54,123 nt of DNA from Bigelowiella natans CCMP2755 (Eukaryota > Protista > Cercozoa): assembly GCA_000320545.1 (NCBI GenBank), contig ADNK01002541.1, positions 1 through 54,123 on the forward strand. Reading direction: 5' to 3'. Under the pieces are notes generated by a model, which was not told the origin of the DNA, did no database searches, and worked only from the letters and a program-made list of their open reading frames with translations. A program made the translations under genes and the position numbers. Below, one piece after another: positions 14,331-49,952 of the stretch (position 1 is the first letter of the stretch; the number at the start of each line of letters is the position of its first letter).

Positions 14331-15466
14331 CCAGTCATAATCAAAAAGCTCTGGGAGTGCACAAACGAAGCAACGACAGTGGAATGCTGGAATGCATGGC
14401 ACAGATGGTGCAGCTGGAAGGATCATCGGAAGTGCCATCTCATTAAATCCCGAATTCTGGAATTTGCTCTCTCTGTGCTGGCTTGTGGTGCTCTGTGAAA
14501 CAGTGAGAACACCGCCCAATGAAAGTGAAGGGTTTGTTTTGCATCCGCCGGCCACATCATTCAATGTTCCATGGAACAATGAAACATTGAAACATTGAAA
14601 CATCAAAATGTTGATGACGATTTCATATTCTATGATAGACTTAGTAATTACATCATTTCTGCACGATGCACAGACAACACATGACACTTGGCTGCCGACA
14701 TGCTTTCCAACTGAATGGAATGGAGGATGGTGGACTGAGCGGAGCGAGCAAGAAAACCTCAGGCAGAAATTGTTTGAATTTTACATCATAAGTCATGTCG
14801 CATTAGGGTCTGGTAGGGGATATTTCCTGGAAAAATGATCACCTCAAAATTACATGCGAATAGTAAGTAACGACATACTTACTTGATGTCTTTTCAATGA
14901 AATGCTCTCATTGCAAACGCCGAGAAAGACTTCCAACGCGAAAACCGAAAGGCCTTGGCAGACTGGCAACCGCGTTTTAAGGTTGCCCGGGAAAATGAAA
15001 TGAGGGGTGGGGGAGGGGATTAGAAGTAAATCAATTTAGAGAATTTCAATTTGGTTGTCCATACCAACTTGAACTGGGATTAATATTAGCAAAGTAGTTG
15101 ATGAAGTAATCCATCGGAGACATGTTGGCGGTTTTCCGCATAAGATTCAACACTCTCTTGCTCTCCTCCCTTCCTCCATCGCTCCCTCTACCCTTTTATC
15201 ATCACAATAAAATTTGGCCGTGCATAACATCAAAGACTATAAACACAGATGGATGCGATCTTCCTCATAACCATCACTGACTTGACTCCTTATATTTTTG
15301 TGATTCGGAAGGGCCCGACCGTTGACCGTTGGACACGAGGATCACTTCAGTCGCCGTTGTTGTCGTTTCATCCTCGAATATCCTCAACAATAGAGTGCTT
15401 TGCACACTTTTGGACCAAACTCCCTCCTTGCTCAGTGACTACTATTACTACTAGCTACTTCTAAGC

Positions 15467-18476: not shown

Positions 18477-18659
18477 GCGCATTGTAACTTGGCTAAACCA
18501 AAGGAACTGTAAACAACATGTTGGTTTAGGTGCTTTCTTTGGTTCAAATCAATCACAAAATTATATTCATTAATTCTCAAATGTGTCCACTTGAGCACAT
18601 CCGTGCCACTAAAATGAGCCATGTGCGCAGATGACCGTGACAAGGTGAACTGATTTGGC

Positions 18660-19320
18660 AATGCATGATCTAGTGATGGCAATTTTTGATTTGCGCAGCG
18701 GTCCTAGCTAGCGTCGCTGCTGCATTTGGGCAGATTGTTCTAGAGATGGTGATGGCTCATCGAATTTGATGTGCACAATTGCCATTGCTAGCTAGCTAGT
18801 CGCGTTGATCGCATCGCATCGCCATCTAATCTCTAGATCTCTAGATCTTACTAGCTTGGTGCGTCATTGTCTGCACTCACTTCTCGATCAGTCCGCAAAG
18901 TCCAGAAACCAGCACACTGCTAGCACCATAGCAGCGCTAGCAGCAGTCCACAGTCTAACTAGCTAGCAGCGCGGATCGCGAACCTCAGGCACTGCTAGAC
19001 TGGGGCAGCACACACAGATTGGAGCATGAACGTCTTCTGTTCTTGCGAGCAGATCTGGAGATCTTTGCGATCTCTAGCTGGTTTGGATGCCATGCTAGCA
19101 TGCTAGCATGACATCTGAACATCTAGACGCATGCTCTCTAGTGCTGCGCTTTAGCGCTAGCTAGTAGCCATTGCGCTCGCTGCCATCTAGCCATGGTCAT
19201 GGATCGAATCCAATGTTGTGGTTTGCTCTGCTAGTCTGTGCCAGTGTGTGACGTGGTCTGAACAGCCAGTGGTGTCCAGCACCGCGTTCATTGCTGTGGG
19301 TTGGACTAGTAGAGCCTAGC
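18660..19320. repeat. CTAG-footprint tract B
   Basis: TGAT-CTAG-TGAT 18666, ATCT-CTAG-ATCT-CTAG-ATCT 18829, ACTG 18991, CATG x2 19091, CCAT 19183, TCTG 19227; TA otherwise scarce. Confidence 0.88.
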
Positions 19321-19530
19321 CGAATGAAGAGATAGATTCGGGTGGAATTGCAGTTGAATGAATGGATGAAGGAATGAATGAAGTGTTTTCAGTTCATTGA
19401 ATCGAAAGGGCAATCAGTTCAATGAGAACAATGATGAAAAACCACACTTCAAAAGTGTGACAAGACACTTGCAATGTGCGAAATGCAGCTCCTCGAACTG
19501 GCTTCAGTGAGGACTGACCAGCAAGCTAAC

Positions 19531-19637
19531 GGGGTTCAGACATGCCAACTCTGGAACTCATGATCCCGTCATCCATGCCTTGTTGGTGGGGTTCAGACAT
19601 GCCAACTCTGGAACTCATGATCCCGTCATCCATGCCT
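19531..19637. repeat. 50-bp perfect direct repeat, 2 copies, 57-bp period
   Basis: ggggttcagacatgccaactctggaactcatgatcccgtcatccatgcct at 19531-19580 and 19588-19637. Confidence 0.95.
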
Positions 19638-20305
19638 GCTAGTTGGTTGAAAAGTTGTTGAATGAGGATCATCGACTTGCTTGTCGACTGCACTAACAAA
19701 TGATGTCGCAGGCTTCAATTCCCCTCATTTCGCCTTGTTCCGAGAGAAGAGCTCGTTCGTTCACAAAGTAGGAACTCGCAAAGAACTAATTCAAAACGCG
19801 TGGAAGGAGGATTTTAATTTGCAAAGAAATGTTCGCAAATGAGCGCATAAAATGGCATGAAAAGGGTTGTCGCGCATGACAAACGCAGTGCTGCACAGGA
19901 ACGATCCGTGTGTCGACCATGCCTCGAATACTCACATCTGTGTATTTTTACATCCAACAGCGTGTCAGCGCACCCTACTCTCCTTTTGTGATACCAATCA
20001 GCATTTGAACGAATACCCACGCATATACAATCAAATGACTACTCTTTGTAGATCATTAGAGCATAGATGGCTGTGGGATGTGCTTTGTAGTAATGTATGC
20101 TTCGTAAGCCTTCGTTGTGCAGCAATAACGTAGCAGATAGCATTCGCTATTTTTAATTCATTCAGAATTTTGTAATTTTGTTTCAAATTTATTATTAACC
20201 AAGGTTGACATCGCTCGAAAGGATACTACTCAAGCAGACCAATTATATATCTGATTAAATTTCGTTCTCTTAAGATTTGAAACCCTAAAAGATTTTCTGA
20301 ACAAA

Positions 20306-21411: not shown

Positions 21412-23682
21412 ATTAATCTATTTGAGGGTATCGCCAAGCCAGAATGGAGTAGATAACTTCGTGAGCACAGGACAAACCAGTGTTAGATTCATGTGGGATA
21501 GCTGCGAGTTATCCCCTCGGATTTCAATGACCCTAACAGCAACCTGCACGAACACGCTTAGTACGATCTTTTTGAAGTAATAATGCTGCTTTATCATACA
21601 GCCTTTATACCTCATATAGCAAATACCCTTACCGAAGCGCTTCCTTTCTCAACTGACCCCAATATTGGATGCGAAGGTCATGATCAAGATGGAAAGGTTG
21701 TTCCCTAATTCACTCACATCTACTTTATTGTAGGAAGTCACGAGGCTTATGTACTTATCGGGGATGCATCGGAAAGTAAGATTTCATATATTGGAAAGTG
21801 CATACATATTCAAAAGCTAAAGCTTCTACTTTCAGTTAATGCTCCTCTCGAATGGCTTTATATTCCAGCGGAATTACCTGGCTTAGGGTGCATATAAATT
21901 AAATTGAATCAATTGTACAGTATTATGTAAGGCAATCGGACTGAAAGAGTTGTGGGAAATTGGATCACTGATACCTGAATATTGCTATCCAGAGTAACTA
22001 ACCCATGTTCAATGGAGGACACTTGTCTGGTATGGCATATCTATCATGTGAAAATAAATGCCGAATCTATGGATAATTTAGGCTACAACCTTCTCACCAT
22101 CGACTTTCTCTCCCAGTACCGTAACTCCAACAGGTTTACTAAATTTGTGCATCGAAATCATGCCGTAACTAAGAAGGTTTATATATTCTTGCGTCAGCTT
22201 CGCCCTCCACGGCAAGTCCATCAGGTTTGTTCATTTTGGTGCAAACGTAACTCGTAACGTTTGTCGTATCTAATCTTAATGAGTGCTTTTGATCTCATGA
22301 GAGTAAAGTTTCGTGATTTTATAGTTTCTCCAACTGCACAGCCGACATTCAGTCCTTCCGGTACCCCATTATTTTCCGATCGACACTCTCAGTTTAGCGA
22401 ATATACATGATTTAGAGTCTCCTTCATCTAGTGCGCCAACAATGTCGCCAAGTACAGGTCTAAAGGAACTTTTCGTCTAAACCTTTCTCACAATGAGCTG
22501 GAGGGTTTCAACAGAAAGAGTGCACAATAATATGTTTACCAGATGTTCCAACGACATGCCCTTCGGAATCTCCATCATCAAGTCCTACTGTATGTTACTA
22601 AAAAGTGAACTACATGTTCGAACATTTACGTTTTGGATTCTCTATGTTGTCAATGGATAACACTGTCCATATGTATACGTATGTTTAGTCTTTGTCTCAC
22701 TTGTACTAGCTATTGCAAGCATTATATACTATTGATACGAACAGGCACAACCGTCAATGACTCCTACTTCTGGACCAACATCGATTCCCACAGAGGCATT
22801 GCAAAAGCTTATTTTTGTTCGTTATGATAGTTTTTGCATATAAATATACTTATGTGACTTATATGTAGGTACCTACTCAAATACCAACAGGAAGTCCTTC
22901 ATCTTCACCGTCTTCATCACCCTCATCTTCACCGTCTTCATCACCATCGTCCGCATTTCCTACAATTTCACCAACTGCTTCACGTAAGATAAACTGTATT
23001 CCAATATTGTATCTATAGAGGAGCTTTAACATTGGTGATTATAAAATTGCTTGATATATGTATATATTTTCAACTTTTTATTGTTAATTGTATGGTCTCT
23101 ATCAATCATTTAGCAACTGGTACTCCAACGACAGTCGGTCCTACAGTTTTCCTTGTAACCCCAGAAAGTTCAGGCTCCGCAAGTACGAATATAGATAGTT
23201 TTATTTTGATGGATAATTGATTCCCGTACGAACAGAGTTCTATATTTTTAGATGGTAGTTCATCTGGAGCATCTATGGGCAGGGGTATTGCGATTGGTGT
23301 GGGCATCACCGTATTTGTCATAATTTTCGCTTTATGCACGGTATGCTAACGAGAACCTTGTTGCCATGTCTCATCATTGCACTAATCCATATTCAATCAT
23401 CATTTTAACTTTCTGTGAATAATGTAAGTGTTGGATCTTCCGGAATTATTTCTCGTCCAACAATCGAGACTCAATAGAAGTCTCCCACGTAGACGTAGCT
23501 GGAGCCCGTTATGTTAATGATTCTGTAGCAATCGGTGTACCAGTTGATTCTACAGGTGTACTTTCCATTTTTTCTTCGATCTTAATTTCATTTTCTGCCA
23601 CGTAAATGCATCTGTCAAAAATTTAGACATTAAGTAATGTGCATGATTCGCAGGCGAGTTGAAGCGGAATTCGTCGGAATGA
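20306..23682 (+). CDS. Type I membrane protein: signal peptide, Cys-containing ectodomain, Ser/Pro/Thr mucin-like stalk, single TM helix, short tail; many small exons
   Basis: MLTPKILQRFSMLLTAMIFQLQSCNA signal; stalk exons SPTAQPTFSPS, PSSSAPTMSPST, VPTTCPSESPSSSPT, AQPSMTPTSGPTSIPTE, VPTQIPTG(SPSS)n; TM GIAIGVGITVFVIIFALCT (~23285-23340); tail ends GELKRNSSE* (TGA 23680-23682). Internal ectodomain exons only partly resolved. Confidence 0.75.
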
Positions 23683-23799
23683 TGGTGGGGTCTCCCAATG
23701 TGCATGTGGCGTAGCAGTTCGCAGTGGATATTTACCATGTTGTAATTCATAAAAAACCTCCTACACATTAATGCACATCAGCAGTGAACCATCATGGTC

Positions 23800-24920
23800 C
23801 TCATTCTAGCATTGATCATATTTTTAGAATTTGCAGCATTCTCTTGTTCTGCTAGTCTGGCATTGAACATTGTGTCGCAGATCGAACGTGACAACGTGAC
23901 TAGCTAGCTAGCTAGGCTAGGCTAGTAGGTGACGTGAATGTTGCCTGGATCACGCTAGCATGCGCTGCTTGTCAAGGCTGTGCTAGTGTGGTCTAGTGGT
24001 GCGTGTGAATGATCAAGTCTGCTAGGCAGAATTCACTGTGTGTGTCACGTGTGGCAAGATTTCGATCTTGTGTCAGCCCACACGACTAGACGATCCAGTG
24101 AGTTGGGACAGGCTCTAGCCAGGGCTTGCCGATGCAGATCACAGACAACACAACACAATGCAATCTAGCTAGCAATGTGCATGCAACGTGTGTCGATTTG
24201 CACAGGACCTGTCTAGCTGTGGGTCCCATGTGTGTGTGTGTGTGTGTGGTCTGTGACACGTGCATCGACCACTTCACTAGTTCACATGTGCCTCCAAGCT
24301 CATGTGTGCCACAAATCAGCGCACACGTGAGCGCACACATTCAAGCTAGCAAGTGTGCATTGCATGCTAGCATGGCACCTGTGTGGATGTGAAAAGAGCA
24401 CACATGCCTTTTTTGCACCCACAAAAGTGGTGGATGTGTTTCACGCGTGCACACACATCTGGACATGCAGGACCTGCAGGTCCCACATGGTTGCCATGTC
24501 CATCACAAGCTAGATCATGCAGTGACAGTCTTGCAGTGTGGGGCCTGCCTGCAGCCTGCTAGCCTGTGCCGAACTAGCGAACTTGACTTGCACCAAGCGC
24601 GACTGCGACATCGCAAGCACCAGAGCAGAAGGGACGCGGAGAGATCTAGAGATGCCAGAGTGTTCAGGTGCAACTCCTCCCTGCTAGCTAGCTAGACAAT
24701 CGTCAGGAAGGCTAGAAGGGTTCGGTAAAAAGGAAGGAAAAAAAGAAAGATCTGTTTTGACAGCAGCTCTCCAGCTAGCTAGCTAGCCAGCTCTGAAGAT
24801 TGAAAAGGAAGATGAAAACGCAATGTTCCACTCCACTGCTGGACTGCTAGACTGGTCTAGTGGTCCATCGCTCAGATCGCTAGATCGTGAAGAATTGTCT
24901 CTCAAAAGGCTAGCAGGGCG
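23800..24920. repeat. CTAG-footprint tract C (clearest example)
   Basis: 18 of 25 CTAG loci are flanked by a perfect 4-bp direct repeat; about 34 of about 36 TA dinucleotides in 23830-24975 lie inside CTAG. Confidence 0.93.
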
Positions 24921-25815
24921 AAACAAAACAAAGAAAGAAGTGCTCACTCAGGACTGAAGCACAACGTGCACGTTGTTTAGCGAAGTGTTTGGGCCGCTCC
25001 GTGGAACACCGCTAATGTACCGGTCTCGATTTCAATGAAAAAGGGAAACGTACGCGTGTGGTTGCAATTTGCTGCGTTTGAAAATTCTAGAAGACGCAGC
25101 AATTTACGTGAAAACACCCAAAAAATGGGCATTTTCTCCTGCAAATCACTGCGAAACCGAAAACTTCCCCCAAAAAAGCTAACAGTTCTCTTCGCTCCAG
25201 CATGGGCATTTGTACTTTAATGCTGACGTAGTCCATGTCGTATCTCATTAAAGTACTGATGACAGTTGAAAATTGAGAAACACTTTCAACAACATAGGGA
25301 TGAAAAATGGGTCCTAACCGTGCGCATTTGCTGGTGGGAACATCCTGTTGGACAAATTTCAAAAGAATTTTGTCCATTCGGGGAAGGCAACCGATAGAAA
25401 CTGAGTAAGAAAACAAGTTGCGACATGAATATCTGTGGCTAGGAGATCCAAACAGGTTCCATTTTGAAGATATTTTCTGATTTGCTACCTACGTTTTGAT
25501 CAGATTTGGTAACCAACCCCACACTATCTTTGTAACTGGTAGGTGCTGACTATGCAACTCGAACCCCCCTCCTCTCCATCTGCTTTGCTCAGAAGGGGAA
25601 TATATATTGACCAACTCCCTCGAATCATGTATATTTTGGTGTTTTTAAGAAAAAAAGTGCCCCAATTATGAAGGGCTGAGATCATTTTCCTGCTGTGTGT
25701 TAAGTTAACCTGTTGGTTTGCAAGCTGAAGTCAATTTTCTCATTGGCATTTGATGTTCTATTACGGACCTTCTCAGTTATAGACGCAAAAAAAGACTTCC
25801 CTTTCTAAGAACACT

Positions 25816-26879
25816 ATGGCACTCGCTGGTGAAACTGATATGGACAAGTTGAAATCCCTCAACAAGAAGACTTACAAAGAACAGGCAGTTTGGTTCTTGA
25901 ACGCATACTGGGGAAATATCTTCGAGAAGGGAGAGGTAGTAAGCATCAGCTCTATATCATTCGATATATTCATATGCGTAGAATATGCAATTGTTGATTA
26001 GTGATTCTGAACAACTAGGGCGATTGCGCTCCGGAGAAACTTTGGGAATGGTGCCACCTTTTCGAAGAACTTGACAACAAGAAGAAAAAAAAGGGGTCGT
26101 ATTAACACTAAGTATAGATGTACACATACTTTAGGTTATATTTGTTGTTGTAGTCTTGCGCATTCATTTTATTCATTCAATTATTTGTTAGCTGTGAACT
26201 CGATGAGTTTAAGGCGCATGTGTTCTTGGAGAAAATTGGACAGACGCTCTCTGTTCGTGAGATGCGCTCTTATCTCAAGGTTATCTATTGATCACAATGA
26301 TAAATCCATCAATAAGTCTATAGTACAAATCCATCCTCAAAATATCCTAATGCCGCTGTTCTCTCCTTAATAGTCGGTGGATATCGACTTCAACAAGAAG
26401 GTCTCACTCATTGAGTACCTTGTGTGCAAGTAAGCCACGCATATATTCGATTTTCAATTTTATTCCAAAGGCATAACGTTCTGAAATACTCTTGTTAGGT
26501 TTAAGGATAATGGAGTTAAGTGGCATGCACTCGTAAATGCGCCCCAGGATGATGAAAAGGCAAAGGCAGAACGTGAAGCAGCGCAGAAGGTCGTCCATGG
26601 AAGGAGATACTCCACTTTCATCACCTTTCTAATAAATCAGTTCATTGAAACTGCTGCACAGAATTAGCACGAAATTGAATCTTTTATTCATACAAGGCTG
26701 TGAGCGCTGCCTCAGAGGCTGCTGCGAAGGCACGCGACGACCATAAAACTGCCCTTTCGAACGAAACTACCGCTGCCAAGGAAGCTAAAGTTGCTGCAGA
26801 GAAAGAACTTCTTGTAATTTTAAGAGCATTAAGATCTGATCCAACAGAATTACGCACGCACACATACCAACTAACTATA

Positions 26880-26918
<39 letters not shown>

Positions 26919-28172
26919 CATATGTGTTTGTGTGTGTGTGTGTGTGTGTTTGAAACTCTCTAGGCAAAGAGTGAGGAGAAGAAAGCTCTTGCTGCAGAAG
27001 CGGTAGTGATACCTCAAATGCAACTGACAAGGATATATTCTGTTGTATGTAGAAGTCCTGAATTTACTGACCTAGATGACAAATTGCTTTTAGGAATGCA
27101 CCGAATTGAAAGCGATTGCAGTGGCTAAGGCTGCTGCTGCCAAGAAGACAGAAGAAGCTGCCGTGAAAACTGCTGCAGAGGCTAAGGCGGCAGCAGAGGA
27201 AGCAGAGGCAAAAGAGAGCGACTTGAAACAAGCAGAATTGAAGGCAAAAGGAGAGGCCAATATGGCTCAAAAGGCGAAAAATGAGAGTGACACAGCTGCC
27301 AGTAATGCAAGAATAGCCCTAGAAAAGGTTCTGGCAGAGGAGAAAAAATACCATAATAAGATGAAAAAACTCCAATCCGACTCGAAAAACATGGAATACG
27401 GAATTGTCAAGCGGAATAAAGCTGCAAACCTTCTAGATCAATTGAAAGCCAAGCCTACGATGGCACTTCAGACAGCAAAAATCACCCTTGCTGCAGCAGA
27501 GAAACGAGCTGCGAAGGCTTTGAAGAAGTCAGCTGCAGCAGCTAAAAAGGCGCAGAATGCTGCAGACAAGATTTCTGCTGCTGCAAGCGCTGCAGAAGCT
27601 GCACGAAAGGCTGCTGATGAACGCAAGGCACAAGCTGATCAGGACGCTAAAGTCGCTAAGGCAGATCGTAAGGTTGCTGATGCTGCCGAGAAGGAATCGA
27701 ACCTCGCTCTGATCGCGGCATCTGACGCCAGAACACTGGCTCAGAAAGCAGCTGCTAAAGCCGAGAAGGCACGGGTGGCTGCTGATGAATCGAAGAAGGT
27801 TGCTACAGCAGCTCGTGAACAGGCAGAAAAATCGCTACGTGACGCAACAGTTGCTATGGAAGATGCAGAATCGAAACTAAAGGAACTTCTGGCGAAACCA
27901 CGCGGCAGTGGAATGGTAATAAACAATGAGACGAGATTTGTTACAATTTGTTTACGAATTGGTAATAGACGAAGATATAATAAATTAATTTCACGATGTC
28001 ACGAATAAATTTCCATCGTACGCGTGATTCGCACATTGAATAATAATGATAATAATAATAACTACTAACAAAACAGGGCGCTAACTGGTGGCTTGAGAGA
28101 GAGTTCGAGGAGGCTAAAAAGTATATGCCAAAGCACAAGCTTAAGAAACTTGCAGCGAAGATGAAGAAGTAG
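25816..28172 (+). CDS. Calcium-regulated actin-bundling protein, Dictyostelium ABP34-like, with EF-hand and long Ala/Lys/Glu coiled-coil insertions; 9 exons
   Basis: EQAVWFLNAYW, EF-hand VDIDFNKKVSLIEYL, GIVKRNKAANLLDQL and C-terminal GANWWLEREFEEAKKY match my recollection of ABP34 motifs (QAVHFLNAYW, VDVNFDGRVSFLEYL, GAIWWMNRDLEEKKK). Junctions GT-AG, in frame; stop TAG 28170-28172. Confidence 0.82.
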
Positions 28173-28289
28173 ATCATCTTTTGCGTCATCAAATTTGCTA
28201 AAGTAGAGAGTGAGAAGGAAATGCTTAGGAGTGCATGATTCGACTTTTAAGTCGTTCTGTTACAATTCAAAGTCGTTCGTAGTGGAGCA

Positions 28290-29280
28290 CATTTACATCT
28301 AGACATACAAGATCTCTGTGCAATGCACGTACGACTGACAACGTACCTGCGCGTCACGCTCCACTGCATCCTTCTCGTGCAATCGTCGACGTGTGCACAT
28401 GCGAACAATCTTCCAAAACATGCATGCGTAGATCAATGAAATTGAGCGTGGCTAGGCTCTAATATTAGGCTCAACAACGCATTCACATGAAGTCCATAGT
28501 TATAGTAGTCCTAGCAGTCTGGCGGCGCGCAACGCGACAGGGCTTGCTGCTACAGCTTATTAGACTGAGCAAGTGAGCAGGGGTACCGGTCATCAAATGC
28601 ATGTTTAGCTGGCTGCTATGTGAGCACATGCTCTAGTACTACTAGCAGATGCATGTGCGCGCGCACACATATGACGCGTGGCGTGCGTCGCACATGTGCA
28701 TGTGCGCCACGGCACTGCTACGCTACGTGTCACGACCAGCTAGCTAGCCGTAGCGCAAGGAGCGCGCAGCATTCCCGGCTACATGCGTGCGCACAGCTGG
28801 ATCGATGGCAACGTGTCTAGCTAGGTAGGTGTAGTTCGATCTAGCGATGATCGATGACATCCATGCTAGCATGGACACGATCGACATGCAACGTGCACAC
28901 ACATGATTGATTGACAATGTCTAGATGTGCATTACATCCGTCTGCATCGATCACGTCATCATGTTTGCATGCTAGCATGTTGCGCGCGTGCATGCTAGCC
29001 GAGCATGAGACGCAACGATGTCTGCTATGCGCTTGTCAGCTAGCTAGTTAGCTGCTAGTTGGGTGGGCTGCTCCACGTCTGCCCTAGCTACTAGCATACT
29101 AGCTAGCTAGTGCTCACTGTGCAGTTCATTCTAGCGATCATGTTCGAAAACGATGAACATCGAGCTAGCGCTCGCAAACAAAACTGGAAAAACTGATCAT
29201 GCGCATCTAGGCATGGCGCGCCCTCATCGATGCAATCGATTACCACCACCGTTCTGGCGTGTCACACAGCTAGAAAGCTC
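28290..29280. repeat. CTAG-footprint tract D (between convergent genes)
   Basis: ACAT-CTAG-ACAT 28295, CGAT 28837, CATG 28862 and 28968, ATGT 28917, GCAT 29203. Confidence 0.85.
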
Positions 29281-29662
29281 CAGAGCCATGCAGCCAACTG
29301 CTGATCAACATGCTGGCTACGTGGCAGCTGAACAGCATGATTCATGACAAGAAAGCACAACAAACATCATTAAGCATTCATTGGATACGATGCTGCTGTG
29401 TGTGTGCTAATGTTATTATAATCTTTCTCTTTTATATAATTGCCATGCATGGCAGCATGAGCGACTACTAGAGTAGGGCAATAATTGCATGACTTTCTTA
29501 CCTCCCAAGGCAAACATACAATCAGTAAAGATATTACAAGCAGTTCTCCTCAGTAAAAATAACTTTATCATATTCGGCCTTTATCAAGTTCTCCCCGCCC
29601 CCCTCCCCAAAATTTAGTGCTTGACTTACGGGTTCCTTCATGCCAACACGAGCAACAGCTCA

Positions 29663-35922: not shown

Positions 35923-41254
<5,332 letters not shown>

Positions 41255-41330
41255 CCGAGGAGCATTGGTTGTACAGCTATCATCACCTGTGCAGCTTCTA
41301 TTGCTTCATCGACTGCTTAACCTGTTAGAG

Positions 41331-41786
41331 ATGAGCAGTATTTATGATACCCTCAGGCTCAAAAGGGCGCATCTTGCGGTCTTATCAGCGTTATCAATAG
41401 TCTTAGTATTCGTTCTGTTGATTCTTCCCTTCGTCGATACTGCAAAAACAAGCTACTACTACACTTCTTTGTCCCCAATCACGCCACGAACCCATGCGAC
41501 AACACCCAACTCTGTTCCCGCTTATTCAAGGATTTTTGCACCATCATCTAGTCACATTCCATGCGGTACGTCACTCTAATCTGCTGGTGGATAACTCAAC
41601 TTTGTAGCTAAAAGATGTCGTCGTCTTGTATTCTCGAATTAAAGGAAGCTCGCAAATGACCAATAACATCGCCCCTTTGAGGAATTTCCAAAAAGCGGTT
41701 GAATTGTTAACAAAATAACACAAGCTCTGTAATTTTTTTATGATGATATGACGACCGTGTTGCATTGGAAATGGGGTCTGCCAATA

Positions 41787-41818
<32 letters not shown>

Positions 41819-43312
41819 CGACGATGATGATGATGATTTTTGTATGTATGTTGCTCTCTTTCTAGATACTTTCGTCGTCATCATCAAAGTGGTCAGCAGC
41901 TGTTCCAGCAGCTTCGTCATTACCTTCAATGGATGACAAAACTTCTCCCATACTCGAGAAACTTTCTGGGATCTCACTCCCTTCAGTTAGCGATAATGAA
42001 GCTCGTGAAGTAATTCTTTCCTTTGATCTTGTTATTAGGATTCTTGGTAGATTTTCTACAAATTTGAAGATGTATTCAGGGAGTACACTTCATTTGTTTG
42101 TGTTAATTATTATGTTTGCAACTACTACAACCCAGATAACAAGTATTCTATCTTTAACCGGAGAGGATGGGGATAACGGAGCTAGTACTACTGGAAGAAG
42201 AAAAAGAAGAGTGTTGATAGCATTCTTCACTCAGTGGGGTGACTTTGACTCATTCGAGATGGCGCAAAGATTGGTAATAAGCTGCAACTAGTGATAGTAG
42301 TAGCATGAATAGTAGTCTCACAACAATCAATCAGCTTTTGCTCATCGATCGATGATGATCATATAGACGACTTAGTGCGTGTACGCTGCTGATGAGACTT
42401 TGATATATGATATAATCAATAAGGTTCCCTACATACCAAAACTAGAGGAAGAAGGTGTAAAGGTGATATTGCAGCTACTTCAACGATGACTGCACGGAAG
42501 CTTGATTGATGATGATGATGATGATGATAACAATCTAAATTGTGACATTAGTAATGGTGGTTTGATGCTATTGGTTGTTGTTGTTTGGCAGCTTGTCGCT
42601 ATTGGAATTGGAGAGATGGAAGGGGCAAAGACATTTGCACGGTTAGACCATCAAAGAATGCACCATTTATGACATTATCTTTATTGTCTTACATGTGTGG
42701 TCCTCGCAATAAATGTGTGTTGATGAACTCACTTATTGCCTGATAATGGTGTTGTTATGACTGAATAACCATCACTTCTACCAGAAGAGTAAGTAGCAGG
42801 AAGAAGCTAAATGTGTCATATCAAACGTGCGACCCCTTCCACCCCCCCCCCCTCCCCCAAATAGTCTCACAGGCTTTCCAGAAAGCAAACTCTACGTTGA
42901 TTCAGAGGCCAAAACACACTCTGCATTAGGGTTGTACGTACGATGATTGTTACTTGCTACTTACTATTATCTTATCATCTTCGTTTTGTATAGTGCTGTT
43001 CTATGGTCTGATGCTGTCCGGTAACTTCCTCTCTCAATACATAGGCTAACTTCCTCTCTCTCTCTCAATACATAGGTTTGAAGCTGGATTTGGTCGTCGC
43101 TCTACTAGTGATGCCACTGCTGGGAAAACTTGGTAATTTATGCAAGATATATAATATCAATCAATGAACTAGAATAGGATGACAGCACAACTACTACTAC
43201 TACTACTACCTTCATTGATTTGAGACTACATTGGAAATAACACGTAGGTGGACCTCTGATAGTGCTTTGAAAGTCACTGAAGGTTATAGTAGCGATGAGT
43301 AGTCAGTATCTG

Positions 43313-43361
<49 letters not shown>

Positions 43362-43556
43362 GATAACAGTACACTATGAAGGGTGGTGGCAACAATAATG
43401 ATGACGATTTAAATAATGTACTTATATAAGCATTAGATGCTGCTGCTTTTCCACAGTGAAGATTTTGGGATTTTTATATATCTTTTGGTGGTTTGTATTT
43501 TTCCTTCTTCAATAGTTATGCTCATCATCAATAACAACACCATCAACGACGTGAAT

Positions 43557-43589
<33 letters not shown>

Positions 43590-43748
43590 CAGGATGGTCA
43601 CCTTATGCAAAGCTATTAGCAATGTGTGCAGGTAACAAACGCAACACAAGTAGAAGAACAATAGCAGTTGTCGTTACTCGCTGATTTAAGAAGAAGCTAT
43701 ATTTTTCCATCAAGATTCTATGATTGGAGAAAACCATCATCATCGTCG

Positions 43749-43779
<31 letters not shown>

Positions 43780-44116
43780 ATCAGTACAAAATAAGAGAAA
43801 TGAAGAGAGAATACCACCGAGATAGACATTAACCGTGTAGTCTTGTTTGTTCTTTTTCTTTTCGTTTGTTTTTTAGTATAATCTTAGAGATATGATGATG
43901 ATAAACACACAGCTGCTGCTGCTACTACAACTAAACTACTACTACTACTACTACTACTATTACTACTACTACTAATACTACTCCATAATAGGACTTGGAT
44001 CTCCAGGAACATTGCAAGAGGTAGCAAGGAAGAGAAAGGAAGAAGAAGAAAAAAGAAACAAGAGCCCATTCTCTCTTATATATTTTGTTTTTGCCTGAGG
44101 CATACTCAATTGACAA

Positions 44117-44156
<40 letters not shown>

Positions 44157-44227
44157 ATATTTGCAAGTAGTACATTATGTGTAAAATCTGTAAGGGTTCA
44201 TGCTAACAAATAGACATCATTGTTGTT

Positions 44228-44260
<33 letters not shown>

Positions 44261-45017
44261 GTGGAAATCATTTTGCAGCCTCTCTCACATATGAATACTC
44301 TGATGAAGGTATTTCGAGGTTATTTAGGGGATAAGAATTCTCCTGAGATCAAAGACAGGTCATGCTAGTTGTATAGTAGTAGTAGTAGTAGTAACAGCAG
44401 TAGTAGTAGTAGTAGTAGTAATGACAGCAGCTGCTATAATATTCAAGACTGTGTATTTACTTGTCAATTCCGCCTTAATACTGAGTAGTACCTTCAGATT
44501 CCTATTCTGCTCGTTGGTATATCACCTAACGATATGTCTTGCTACCAACATTTATCGTCATATAACTGTGTTTAAGATTTCCTGGGGTGCTCCCCGACCA
44601 GATGTCTGGCCTCTTTGGTGTTCTTGGAGGTAGCAGCAAGTACTAGTAGTAGTAGTAGTAGTAGTGGTAGTAGTGGTAGTTGTTGTGGTGGTAGTAGTAG
44701 TAGTAAGCACGTCATGGTTCATTATTTCCATTCTCATCGTTTGACATTCATCGTTTGGTAATCGTTGAAGGGCTTTTTATGGCTACATGGTTGTAATAAT
44801 CATAGTGACAGTCTTCATCACCACCACCATCATCATCATCATACCATCACCATCATCATCATCATCATCATCACCATCATTATATCTCTGCCATTGTCGT
44901 GAGTGCTGCAAAGTATTCATTATGCAGTTGTTGTGTATTTATTACTATCGATGTTTAGACGGATATCAAAGACCTTTTGAGCTTGCCACTGTTCGCCTTC
45001 TTAACATGTACTGTATA

Positions 45018-45049
<32 letters not shown>

Positions 45050-45797
45050 CATGAGTCATATCACTCATATGATGATGATATCCAAGATCTCTAGAATGTA
45101 GTTGTTCTTGTATTGTTTGCTTCAATTACTCAATACTCTTCCATTGATTCACTTTTTGGCCTTCGTCGTCGTCACAAAAGGGGAAACATTCTGACGAGAT
45201 GGGAGGATCTCACTCCAAAGGATAAGAATCTTATTTTACAGAGAGGTGCTAATTGTTGTCATCTGAATAATATCTGTGTCTCTCCTTCTCACGTACCGTC
45301 ATGCCCTTGAACAAATATTTCATAGTTGTGGTAATAGTACTCTGGTGTTTGATATTTTTGTTCCTGCTTACTCAAATACTCGACGACACTATTTTTTTAG
45401 ACAGCAGTGATAATTCTTCCTCTTGAATATCAGTGTAGTGCTCTGCCAATTAACTTAAAAACCATCTATATCACAGGTGGTGCTATTATTCTGGACGCTG
45501 ATGGAGAGGTGGCATCAACAATATCGATGAAGATGATGATGAAGAGGAGGATGAGGAGGAGGAGGAGGAGGAGGAGGAGGAGGAGGATAATGATAAGCGT
45601 CAAGTATTGGTGTGATATCCTCTAAAAGTACAAAAATGTGGAATATGTTGTGGTTGTCTTTCCTAACAAAACAACAGGTGCTTTACAGACATGACGACAA
45701 AGGCATTTTAGGCTATGCTGACGTTGATGAAGTAGTAGTGTTAGAAGTAGTAGTGTTACTAGTAGTGGTAGTAGTAGTAACAGTACCCAGTATGATG

Positions 45798-45841
<44 letters not shown>

Positions 45842-46024
45842 TGTGTGTATCATATTATCTTATTCTTCTATAAAACAAGCGTTCTGTGATAAATCCATGG
45901 AGTATCTGCAAATATACTAAAAATACATCAAATAGAAATATGCTACATCACTCACCATCATACACTGCGTTTACGACCGATAATTTATCAGATCGTCGAG
46001 GTTGCTACGGCTTCTTCGTCTTAA
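41331..46024 (+). CDS. Peroxiredoxin-like AhpC/TSA_2 family protein (cyanobacterial/algal type) with bipartite plastid-targeting leader
   Basis: Exon 1 MSSIYDTLRLKRAHLAVLSALSIVLVFVLLILP plus a Ser/Thr-rich transit-like region splices in frame via ~41645-41697 to 41866. Mature motifs: TQWGDFDSFEMAQRL, LVAIGIG, TGFPESKLYVD, LLAMCAGLGSPGTLQEVFRGY, YQRPFELATVRLLNM, LILQRGG, LYRHDDKGILGYA. Stop TAA 46022-46024. Confidence 0.85.
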
Positions 46025-46299
46025 TGTAGCATGCATGACTCCTATGTGGAGAAGGCTCCTGGTTCATATGTTTCTCCCGTTATTTCTTGCAGAGGAGGCT
46101 GTACGTGCCACATGACTGTGATCAGCTACAAGATACAATACATATATTGAATACACGATGATAGTTTTATATTGATGCTTAATATGCACAATTTTGACTG
46201 CAAGATGCAGGTTCATTAAACTATTGACACATTATATATTGAATCACAGCGCGGCAGTCATGCGATGCAGATGTGAGTAATGCTTAGGCGTCCTTGCCC

Positions 46300-46330
46300 A
46301 CGCGCACGCTAGCACGTCTAGCATACCAAC

Positions 46331-46374
<44 letters not shown>

Positions 46375-47000
46375 GCATACAAGACGCATGTGATGAATTG
46401 ATTAAATCTTTTAAACACGTGTCCTCCAAATGTAGCTATGCAATGTGTACATATATACATATACATATATATATATATATATATATATTTATTTATTTAC
46501 ATATCCGTCTTATATATGTATAAATCCTATGCACATGTCCTGATGGAGACAGATCGAACGCACACGCTGCATTATGCATGAATACGACATATCGAGTCGA
46601 TGATGCATAATTGTGCACGTGACCCTGCGGCTTCAAAGGCTTACATCGTGCGACTGCTACTGTACGTATGCGTACATACGACAACACTTATGTTCCCTTT
46701 ATGCAATTACAATTAATATCACATGTCATCATCCATGTTCGACTGCATGGTTGAGCATGCATGACAACGACGATACATGTCTATATCTAGATGTGCGCTT
46801 GCTAGCTTGGCGCTATCCTAGCATCCTAGCACTAGAGCATCGTATCGTGTGGCCATGTACATGCAGGGAAGACACCGCTAGACCGCAGACTGCTAGACTG
46901 CCTTACTCGCATGCTAACATGTTGCCCGATCATTGCCATTATACATACATGGTATACGTGTGCCTGTGCATATGCGTAACGCACTAGCTAGCGCACGTCG
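46300..47000. repeat. CTAG-footprint tract E (between convergent genes)
   Basis: CACG-CTAG-CACG 46305, CTTG 46798, AGCA 46828, ACCG 46874, ACTG 46889, CGCA-(CTAG)2-CGCA 46980. Confidence 0.82.
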
Positions 47001-48978: not shown

Positions 48979-49119
48979 CGACAGGCACTTGTACTAGACT
49001 TTTGGGACTGTACACATCTAGATGTACCATGACATGTGTTAAGTTGTAGAGCATGGCAATTCAATTTCCAGCGAGATCCAACAACGCACATGTGCACTAC
49101 TCTGTACTCAGTACTACAG

Positions 49120-49770
49120 CTAGATATGACAATCTAGCAATATCACGTCACGCAAAATATTTATTCAATTGCCGATATAGTATGTGCTGGCGTGAATAAT
49201 TGGATGCGCTCACATTGCTTGTTACCAATGCACGACGCACGTACCTAGCTAGCTAGGTACGCTACACGTACACACACACGCTCGGCGCATATCTAGATAT
49301 GCTAGCATAACTAGATAGATTCTGCCGGCTAGCCGGTCTAACATATCTGCCTGCTGCTAGCTAGCTAGCACTAGAGCCTGCACAACTAGACAACAAAAAA
49401 ATGGCAATGGCATTCATCCTGCTGGATCTAGTCATTGTGTTTTATGTGATGTACCGAACCACTAGACCACGCATACATCAAATGTAAACTGATCAGTTCT
49501 AGAGTTTTGCATTATTGCGCTGTTATTGCAGCCTACTTCAAAGGCGCACACCTCTAGACATTTGGCTAGCTAGATAGACATCGCTAGATCGCTATATAAT
49601 CGCGTCGACATGACGACGCAAAAACTCTTTACGTTTTTCCATGATTATCATGCTAGCATGTAGCGATCTCTAGATCTAGGTGATGCACTTGCTTGTGCAT
49701 GCTAGCATGGCTAAATGGCGGCACTGCACACGCTTACGTAATGCAGCTAACGTTCCACTAGTCCATGTAA
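49120..49770. repeat. CTAG-footprint tract F (between convergent genes)
   Basis: About 12 perfect cases: CAAT 49130, GTAC-(CTAG)3-GTAC 49241, ATAT 49289, CCGG 49325, ACAA 49382, ACCA 49458, AGTT 49495, ATCG 49580, CATG 49649 and 49698, ATCT 49666, TCCA 49754. Confidence 0.9.
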
Positions 49771-49952
49771 AACAAGATGATATATAATGATGTAATTGTT
49801 ATAAAATGTATCTTTACATAGCCACAACAAGTAGAACAGAATAAATATCATGCAAGCAATATATTTGCATTTTGTAGCTAACAAAGTGCAAGTGCAAAAA
49901 ACTGGCTTTCAATTTTTGTGCAGCAGGTAGAAATTGTAGGCTCATGATGGTA

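Follow-up and report, generated by a model that had tools for sequence, protein, structure and literature searches.

Short intergenic tracts in the genome of the alga Bigelowiella natans CCMP2755 carry many copies of an 8-bp mark, the tetranucleotide CTAG followed by a second copy of the 4 bp that precede it (NNNN-CTAG-NNNN), which we call a scar. We analyzed these scars in a 54,123-bp stretch of DNA (GenBank assembly GCA_000320545.1, contig ADNK01002541.1, positions 1 to 54,123 of the forward strand; hereafter the window), and in particular in one spacer, tract C (23790-24930). Repeat copies with and without scars show that the scars are real insertions that postdate the dispersal of the repeat. 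We lean towards the view that they are end-joining footprints of a cut-and-paste element, which would have made a 4-bp target duplication and had CTAG at its termini, with the overhang sealed by annealing.

Tract C contained 27 CTAG loci, a run of consecutive CTAG units being counted as one locus, and 19 of them had a perfect 4-bp flank duplication. A preliminary description of this DNA had counted 18 of 25; the 18 sites that it named are all present at the positions given, but its totals were too low, and TAGG-CTAG-TAGG at 23918-23929 completes the perfect set. Its two near-matches, CACG-CTAG-CATG and AAGG-CTAG-CAGG, were also found, as two further loci whose flanks agree at three of four positions (Table 1), and its density of one scar per 45-60 bp is right. 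Away from CTAG, 3.1% of the 4-mers in tract C were repeated at the same spacing, which gives P = 4e-23 for the 19 observed matches. When the flanks were permuted among the loci of the tract, the mean was 1.0 match and the maximum 7. Across the window 64 of 229 CTAG loci were perfect, and they were gathered in six tracts (13.3-14.35, 18.65-19.35, 23.79-24.93, 28.28-29.3, 46.3-47.0 and 49.1-49.8 kb).

Perfect scars occupied 168 bp (14.7%) of tract C, and the share rose to 224 bp (19.6%) once edited cores and scars with a single flank mismatch were included. The corresponding content was 0 bp in the two flanks of equal length and 5.8 bp in the shuffled tract. The earlier statement that a sizeable part of the spacer would consist of scars therefore holds within these limits and not in the sense of a majority: recognizable scars make up about a fifth of the spacer. 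In a 254-kb sample consisting of the window and three other contigs, 147 perfect scars were found. Among the 4-nt fillers between 4-bp repeats in the scar islands of this sample, CTAG occurred 163 times and had no close competitor; the next-ranked fillers were phase-shifted readings of the identical sites, followed by CCAG and CTGG. Outside the window the scar density was 0.41 per kb (200 kb), which extrapolates to about 38,000 scars in the genome. A literature search found no paper tying CTAG marks to Bigelowiella or to excision footprints, and an Rfam search of the window gave no match. There is practically no chance that the marks are an assembly or sequencing artefact, as contigs from 14 DNA runs contain tract C unchanged and RNA-run contigs contain parts of it.

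The evidence for insertion came from a dispersed repeat resembling a miniature inverted-repeat transposable element (MITE), of which one copy lies in tract C and about 20 partial matches lie elsewhere in the genome. We removed the perfect scars in silico from the tract C part of the repeat (24204-24480) and from five paralogous copies, and the summed pairwise local alignment score of the six copies rose from 1555 to 1652, whereas it fell to 1163 +/- 111 (at most 1422) when as many random 8-mers were taken out instead. The preliminary description, which had read the scars as accumulated 8-bp insertions (CTAG plus the 4-bp duplication), had suggested such a removal as a check, and the outcome was positive. 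Furthermore, the 8 bp of the scar at 24273-24284 were absent from three paralogous copies, which read ...CTTCACATG... there, and two other copies carried a different scar, of the CATG type, a few bases from this position. Both the empty site and the alignment thus support the reading of the scars as insertions.

Two further observations concern repeat copies. By our reading, the outer ends of the MITE-like repeat look like TGTRGG...CCYACA, and a CTAG-type scar was seen in the loop of the terminal palindrome at four readable ends (the left end in the window, the left and right ends of copy L002 and the left end of copy L004). The loop of the terminal palindrome is a local hot spot for scars, though palindromes are not generally preferred. 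At 19531-19644 of the window there are two tandem 57-bp copies, 93% alike, of which only the second ends with a CTAG-bearing stretch (CCTG-CTAG-TT versus CCTTGTTGGT); this may be another filled and empty pair with a later change.

The target site was analyzed in 140 single scars. The base adjoining the duplication (-1 and +5) was C or G in 71% of cases per side. The first duplicated base was C in 48%, A in 34% and G in 4%, and the fourth mirrored it with G in 48%, T in 34% and C in 4%. The target preference is thus palindromic, S-MNNK-S, and CATG led all targets with an 8.9-fold enrichment. The length of the duplication is fixed at 4 bp: a 5-bp class was not enriched in the islands, and there was no separate 3-bp class, because the single flank mismatches of decayed scars were spread evenly across the four positions. 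We found no general preference for longer palindromes or hairpins as targets and no periodicity in the spacing of the scars.

Fillers other than CTAG were a minority and followed a pattern. In the islands of the 254-kb sample, CTATAG had perfect flanks in three of four occurrences, CTAGCTAG was found with perfect flanks seven times and CTCTAG once. Genome-wide, CATG-CT(1-6 nt)AG-CATG occurred at 424 sites, against 26 for the reversed control. Among the first 50 of these sites listed, 30 had fillers that were prefix pairs of CTAG or TpA-edited forms of such pairs: CTAGCTAG and CTAGCAG (8 each), CTATAG (5), CTAGTAG (4), CTGCAG and CTAGCCAG (2 each) and CTTAG (1). In each of these variants, the first 2-4 nt of CTAG are followed by the reverse complement of a stretch of this kind, and some variants also have a TA changed to CA or TG. 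The canonical 14-mer G-CATG-CTAG-CATG-C occurred 618 times in the genome and its control 0 times; as a rough estimate, a tenth of the CATG scars have a variant filler. A dominant CTAG accompanied by minor variants is the pattern given by end joining of two CTAG-bearing ends.

Runs of CTAG with n = 1, 2, 3, 4 and 5 units occurred 751, 19, 16, 2 and 1 times, respectively, in the 254-kb sample, and (CTAG)5 and (CTAG)7 with CATG flanks occur as well. An insertion into CTAG adds two units and so accounts for the excess of odd runs; the run lengths fit re-insertion into CTAG and not slippage. The nested block at 24767-24794 records an order of events: insertion at CTCT came first, editing then turned the scar's core into CCAG, this CCAG became a target, and finally the new CTAG was targeted in turn. 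Other (CTAG)3 runs in the window lie at 13665, 13885, 14101, 18788, 29099 and 49357.

The analysis shows that the scars are insertions with a duplication of fixed length, that there is a target preference, that the fillers form a spectrum, that scars are re-used and that they lie behind poly(A) sites. The element itself, its ends and its overhang are postulates of the footprint reading, which would work as follows. The element's enzyme would cut the target with a fixed 4-bp stagger, which would give the 4-bp duplication and the palindromic preference. Excision would leave the terminal letters of the element on both flanks, most simply as a 4-nt single-stranded CTAG; because CTAG is self-complementary, such ends would anneal, be ligated and leave exactly one CTAG. 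Ends blunted before joining would give CTAGCTAG, and nibbled ends would give CTAGTAG, CTATAG or CTTAG. Each scar would duplicate its target and add a new good target, G-CTAG-C, so that scars would beget scars, and this would produce the chains, the surplus of (CTAG)3 runs and the block of nested scars described above. The process is restricted to a zone of about 1 kb immediately downstream of poly(A) sites. A second process, TpA editing, affects many of the same tracts and edits the TA of CTAG about tenfold less often than other TAs.

Several observations weigh against the footprint reading, most of them from the search for a donor. We searched the 254-kb sample for NNNN-CTAG...CTAG-NNNN and NNNN-CT...AG-NNNN, allowing up to 15 kb between the two ends and requiring inverted inner sequence, and in this limited search no pair was convincing; the best CTAG pair (18788/23911) was rejected, since 15 of 20 letters of its inner arms match (the first 8 being CTAG repeats) and it has neither matching flanks nor further similarity. 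No 8-mer adjoining CTAG was recurrent or over-represented, and CATG-flanked CTAG pairs 5-30 nt apart contained no mini-element, nearly all of them being two independent scars. We know of no eukaryotic superfamily that joins a non-specific 4-bp duplication with CTAG termini. When the whole genome was searched with Pfam models, no DDE_3, piggyBac (PF13843) or MULE match was returned, rve, Harbinger and Pfam-less families lying outside the search; a 2025 genome paper counts only eight DDE transposase genes in B. natans (PMC12730881). The searches did return two copies of a pogo-like DDE_1 gene (L029, G000:C2661:202080-202535; L030, G000:C2845:6046-6501), 99.4% identical and with an open frame of 600 amino acids. 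Its visible left end is not CTAG, and its right end lies beyond the locus examined. Its relatives in a protein search were solely B. natans proteins (Bigna1 132464 and 82893), and its TA content is normal, so that it is apparently a young element or a recent duplication. Three hAT-like frames were also found, mostly in TpA-erased DNA, and these loci had no fitting ends.

The remaining adverse points concern the scars themselves. About 28% of the CTAG loci in islands have no flank duplication, and the outer flank duplication predicted by nested insertion was seen in only 2 of the 10 (CTAG)3 runs of the window. There was also no sign that scars are forming at present: all sampled words of window positions 22500-26500 were found in 14 of 14 DNA runs, which may all come from the source strain. 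The flanks of scars have diverged by about 3%, and this value together with the published base mutation rate suggests that the scars accumulated over roughly 1e8 generations. No CTAG insertion is among the indels listed for a mutation-accumulation experiment that yielded 21 indels in 3,132 generations, a list that is possibly incomplete (bioRxiv 10.64898/2026.01.13.699255). At the long-term rate about one event would be expected in that whole experiment, so that the absence says little.

An alternative that we consider unlikely, though serious, is that a host-encoded or virus-derived enzyme inserts the 8 bp directly at transcription-end zones, with no mobile element passing through. Candidates for such an enzyme would be a transposase or integrase that has been domesticated, or a nuclease that cuts with a 4-bp stagger, for example a type II topoisomerase. 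Once filled in, the ends would be given a short constant CTAG, with a fixed template or an oligonucleotide as its source, before being rejoined. The palindromic target profile would suit any dimeric enzyme with a 4-bp stagger, and trapped topoisomerase II in yeast gives 2-4-bp duplications through end joining. However, stagger-and-fill would also be expected to leave plain 4-bp tandem duplications without filler, and these were no more frequent in the islands (0.72%) than repeats at other spacings (0.65-0.91%). The minor fillers, moreover, resemble variable retention of one terminal CTAG, as transposon ends give, and we know of no repair route that adds a constant tetranucleotide. What counts for a direct enzyme is that neither a donor element nor a matching transposase was found and that the tracts are tightly limited to about 1 kb behind poly(A) sites. 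It is very improbable that the marks are not insertions at all and represent 8-mer tandem repeats (NNNNCTAG) growing by replication slippage, or conserved binding palindromes: chains such as CATG(CTAGCATG)2-3 do exist, but most scars are single and involve dozens of different 4-mers, they are missing from paralogous copies, slippage cannot create the first CTAG, and the run lengths are not monotonic, n = 3 being about as common as n = 2.

A further point in favor of such simple repeats is the occurrence of the double scar elsewhere. The 20-mer double unit was absent from the viral contigs searched and present in 22 unrelated metagenome contigs, mostly as unrelated 8-bp repeats. One of these contigs (L039, Ga0190265_10637046) has a bacterial, plasmid-like look, with several CATGCTAGCATG palindromes, as iterons, in the spacers around an apparent partition-type ATPase gene; as this contig shows, a match to the double-scar probe need not stem from the algal process. 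A marine metagenome contig (L041, Ga0115005_10017904) shows CATG-CTAG-CATG-CTAG-CATG and ATGG-(CTAG)2-ATGG within 100 bp (140-240). It carries intron-free eukaryotic genes, Nudix-type and FtsY-like, and is not from B. natans; it may represent another organism with the same mark, or chance.

Among known systems, the footprints of Tc1/mariner elements are close to the scars in form. Minos and Sleeping Beauty footprints consist of the target duplication plus retained terminal nucleotides, and the footprints of these elements and of Tc1 share with the scars the order duplication, terminal nucleotides, duplication, a dominant form with minor end-joining variants, and overhangs that anneal. In contrast, the Tc1/mariner duplication is TA only (2 bp), whereas here it is 4 bp of nearly any sequence, rarely with TA; and here there is no DDE_3 match, the sole DDE_1 gene has a non-CTAG end and no element was found. 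The piggyBac and PiggyMac systems are alike in having a self-complementary 4-nt overhang (TTAA there, CTAG here) that would seal cleanly, but in piggyBac TTAA is itself the target duplication and excision is seamless, whereas here the targets vary, a scar is left and PF13843 is missing. Eukaryotic superfamilies with 4-bp target duplications include Sola, Ginger, Chapaev-type elements and some Academ; they share the fixed 4-bp duplication but have termini other than CTAG (TGT..ACA in Ginger), and to our knowledge their footprints are not described. CTAG is a favored site of the bacterial IS5 and IS630 DDE enzymes, which are related to the eukaryotic Harbinger and Tc1 groups; there, however, CTAG is a pre-existing target, and the empty sites of B. 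natans are without CTAG. We know of no counterpart in scale to about 40,000 uniform scars without a visible donor.

More broadly, we put forward, as a tentative proposal that is possible rather than probable, that an undescribed cutting and joining enzyme wrote tens of thousands of identical 8-bp marks in transcription-end zones of about 1 kb and built about a fifth of these spacers, beside a TpA editor that spares CTAG. The enzyme might belong to a new cut-and-paste superfamily (4-bp stagger, CTAG ends, very few copies left) or be a domesticated, element-free descendant. If so, its discovery would yield a transposase or integrase of a new kind, with a palindromic end that seals itself and with targeting to the 3' flanks of genes. 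If the scars are footprints, a mobile element of which little or nothing can now be seen has left traces of about 40,000 visits across the genome, a record of unique clarity. The scars would by themselves reveal the element's end sequence (CTAG), stagger (4 bp) and target rules. In a compact algal genome, short intergenic spacers could then be partly transposon scars whose growth is self-reinforcing.

The TpA editor is a hypermutation process reported in B. natans, by which TpA in silent foreign DNA becomes TpG or CpA (Mettrop et al. 2026, bioRxiv 10.64898/2026.01.13.699255); CTAG scars are not mentioned in that report. Tract C strongly shows its signature of TA loss, and the cores and flanks of the scars are edited likewise, but the process is one of point mutation and is unable to make insertions. 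Of the 39 TA dinucleotides in tract C, 35 lie inside CTAG. Outside CTAG, rho(TA) was 0.06 and rho(CA+TG) 1.65, well inside the published cut-offs, whereas with CTAG counted rho(TA) was 0.56, above the cut-off of 0.43 (bioRxiv 10.64898/2026.01.13.699255). Because the TA of CTAG lifts the value in this way, the published TpA-depletion scan would miss tract C, and the published genome-wide tally of edited clusters probably misses scar-rich tracts. Scans for edited DNA therefore need CTAG masked.

An age-matched control for editing was provided by the 4+3 filler variant, which has two TAs within one scar (72 CATG-flanked sites; control, 0). These sites comprised CTAGTAG (25), CTAGCAG (43), CTGGTAG (1) and CTGGCAG (3). 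Counting only pattern-visible change, the TA of GTAG was edited in 64% and the TA of CTAG in 5.6%; that is, the TA of CTAG was edited about tenfold less often than a TA of equal age. Of the canonical G-CATG scars, 618 had an intact core and 209 an edited one (CTGG or CCAG), or about 13% per adenine. The published table likewise has the fewest events where the edited A precedes G, with 23 events for TAG plus CTA against 58 to 81 in the other three contexts, numbers that are not normalized for context abundance (bioRxiv 10.64898/2026.01.13.699255). CTAG is the poorest substrate because it is the sole TA context with G after both adenines, and it stands out in a TA-free background because editing removes other TAs and rarely the TA of CTAG. 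Among 40 single flank mismatches, 30 were transitions, and by our reading of the list nearly half of the 40 were TA versus TG or CA. The scars can thus serve as dated internal probes of TpA editing, and the rule that A before G is a poor substrate can be tested on a candidate deaminase.

Scar formation and TpA editing are linked but separable. About half of 19 scar islands were TpA-erased (rho at most 0.33) and the rest were not (0.6-1.2), tract F being among the latter. Two of the hAT-like frames lie in nearly TA-free DNA (L031, G000:C2149:9838-13038, and L033, G000:C2036:87357-90518; non-CTAG rho of 0.04 and 0.10, respectively), and the fully edited locus L031 had one perfect CTAG scar only, so that heavy TpA editing alone does not attract scars. 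These two results rule out TpA-edited chromatin as the common target of scar formation.

The features of tract C, the other tracts and the neighboring genes are collected in Table 1. RNA contigs of the gene upstream of tract C, with GT..AG introns at 23340-23427 and 23553-23650 (+ strand), end at 23759 and 23803, where the tract starts, and raw RNA reads had zero depth from 23900 to 25500. The poly(A) sites of the next gene (28289-28305), seen as loose poly(A) ends, coincide with the start of tract D. Nothing is unusual about the neighboring genes, which encode IFT52, a coiled-coil actin-bundling-like protein and AP-3 beta.

Table 1. Scars, scar-rich tracts and neighboring genes in the window
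Feature	Position	Strand	Remarks
Tract A	13300-14350		Same kind as tract C
Tract B	18650-19350		Same kind as tract C; downstream of IFT52 gene
Upstream gene, last exons and 3' end	23428-23803	+	Exon pieces 23428-23552 and 23651-23803
Tract C	23790-24930		Scar-rich spacer, GC-richer (50%), immediately 3' of upstream gene
Scar CATT-CTAG-CATT	23802-23813
Scar TCTG-CTAG-TCTG	23848-23859
Compound block	23896-23929		(CTAG)4, then two GCTAG units, ending in TAGG-CTAG-TAGG; no outer flank duplication
Decayed scar CACG-CTAG-CATG	23951-23962		Flanks 3/4 identical
Adjacent scars TGTG-CTAG-TGTG and TGGT-CTAG-TGGT	23979-24000
Scar ACGA-CTAG-ACGA	24082-24093
Variant scar CAAT-(CTAG)2-CAAT	24161-24176		4+4 filler; same filler found genome-wide with CATG flanks
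Copy of dispersed MITE-like repeat	24204-24490		GGACC..GGTCC small palindrome at either end
Four scars inside MITE-like repeat	24209, 24273, 24342, 24363		Missing from other copies
Scar TTCA-CTAG-TTCA	24273-24284		Empty site in paralogous copies
Scar with edited core ACAT-CTGG-ACAT	24455-24466
Scars CCTG-CTAG-CCTG and CGAA-CTAG-CGAA	24555-24581
Scar with edited core AGCA-CCAG-AGCA	24616-24627
Scar AGAT-CTAG-AGAT	24642-24653
(CTAG)3	24680-24699		No flank duplication (CCTG / ACAA)
Scar AAGG-CTAG-AAGG	24708-24719
Nested scars CTCT[CCAG[(CTAG)3]CCAG]CTCT	24767-24794
Chain ACTG-CTGG-ACTG-CTAG-ACTG, then TGGT-CTAG-TGGT	24835-24864		Duplicated target re-used, one core edited
Scar ATCG-CTAG-ATCG	24876-24887
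Decayed scar AAGG-CTAG-CAGG	24906-24917		Flanks 3/4 identical
Promoter-side DNA before next gene	24931-25765		Scar-free, 835 bp; one CTAG, no duplication; 0 events
Next gene	25766-28305	+	Coiled-coil protein, F-actin-bundling C-terminal match; RNA contigs, GT..AG introns
Tract D	28280-29300		Between convergent 3' ends of coiled-coil gene and AP-3 beta gene (- strand)
Tract E	46290-47000		Same kind as tract C; not TpA-erased
Tract F	49100-49780		Same kind as tract C; 13 scars; non-CTAG rho(TA) 0.81, not TpA-erased

Apart from the scars, di- and trinucleotide microsatellites are packed very densely at positions 1-12000 and 37000-46000 of the window. The 54 kb contain more than 100 arrays, many of them in frame inside open reading frames, where they give long runs of a single amino acid.

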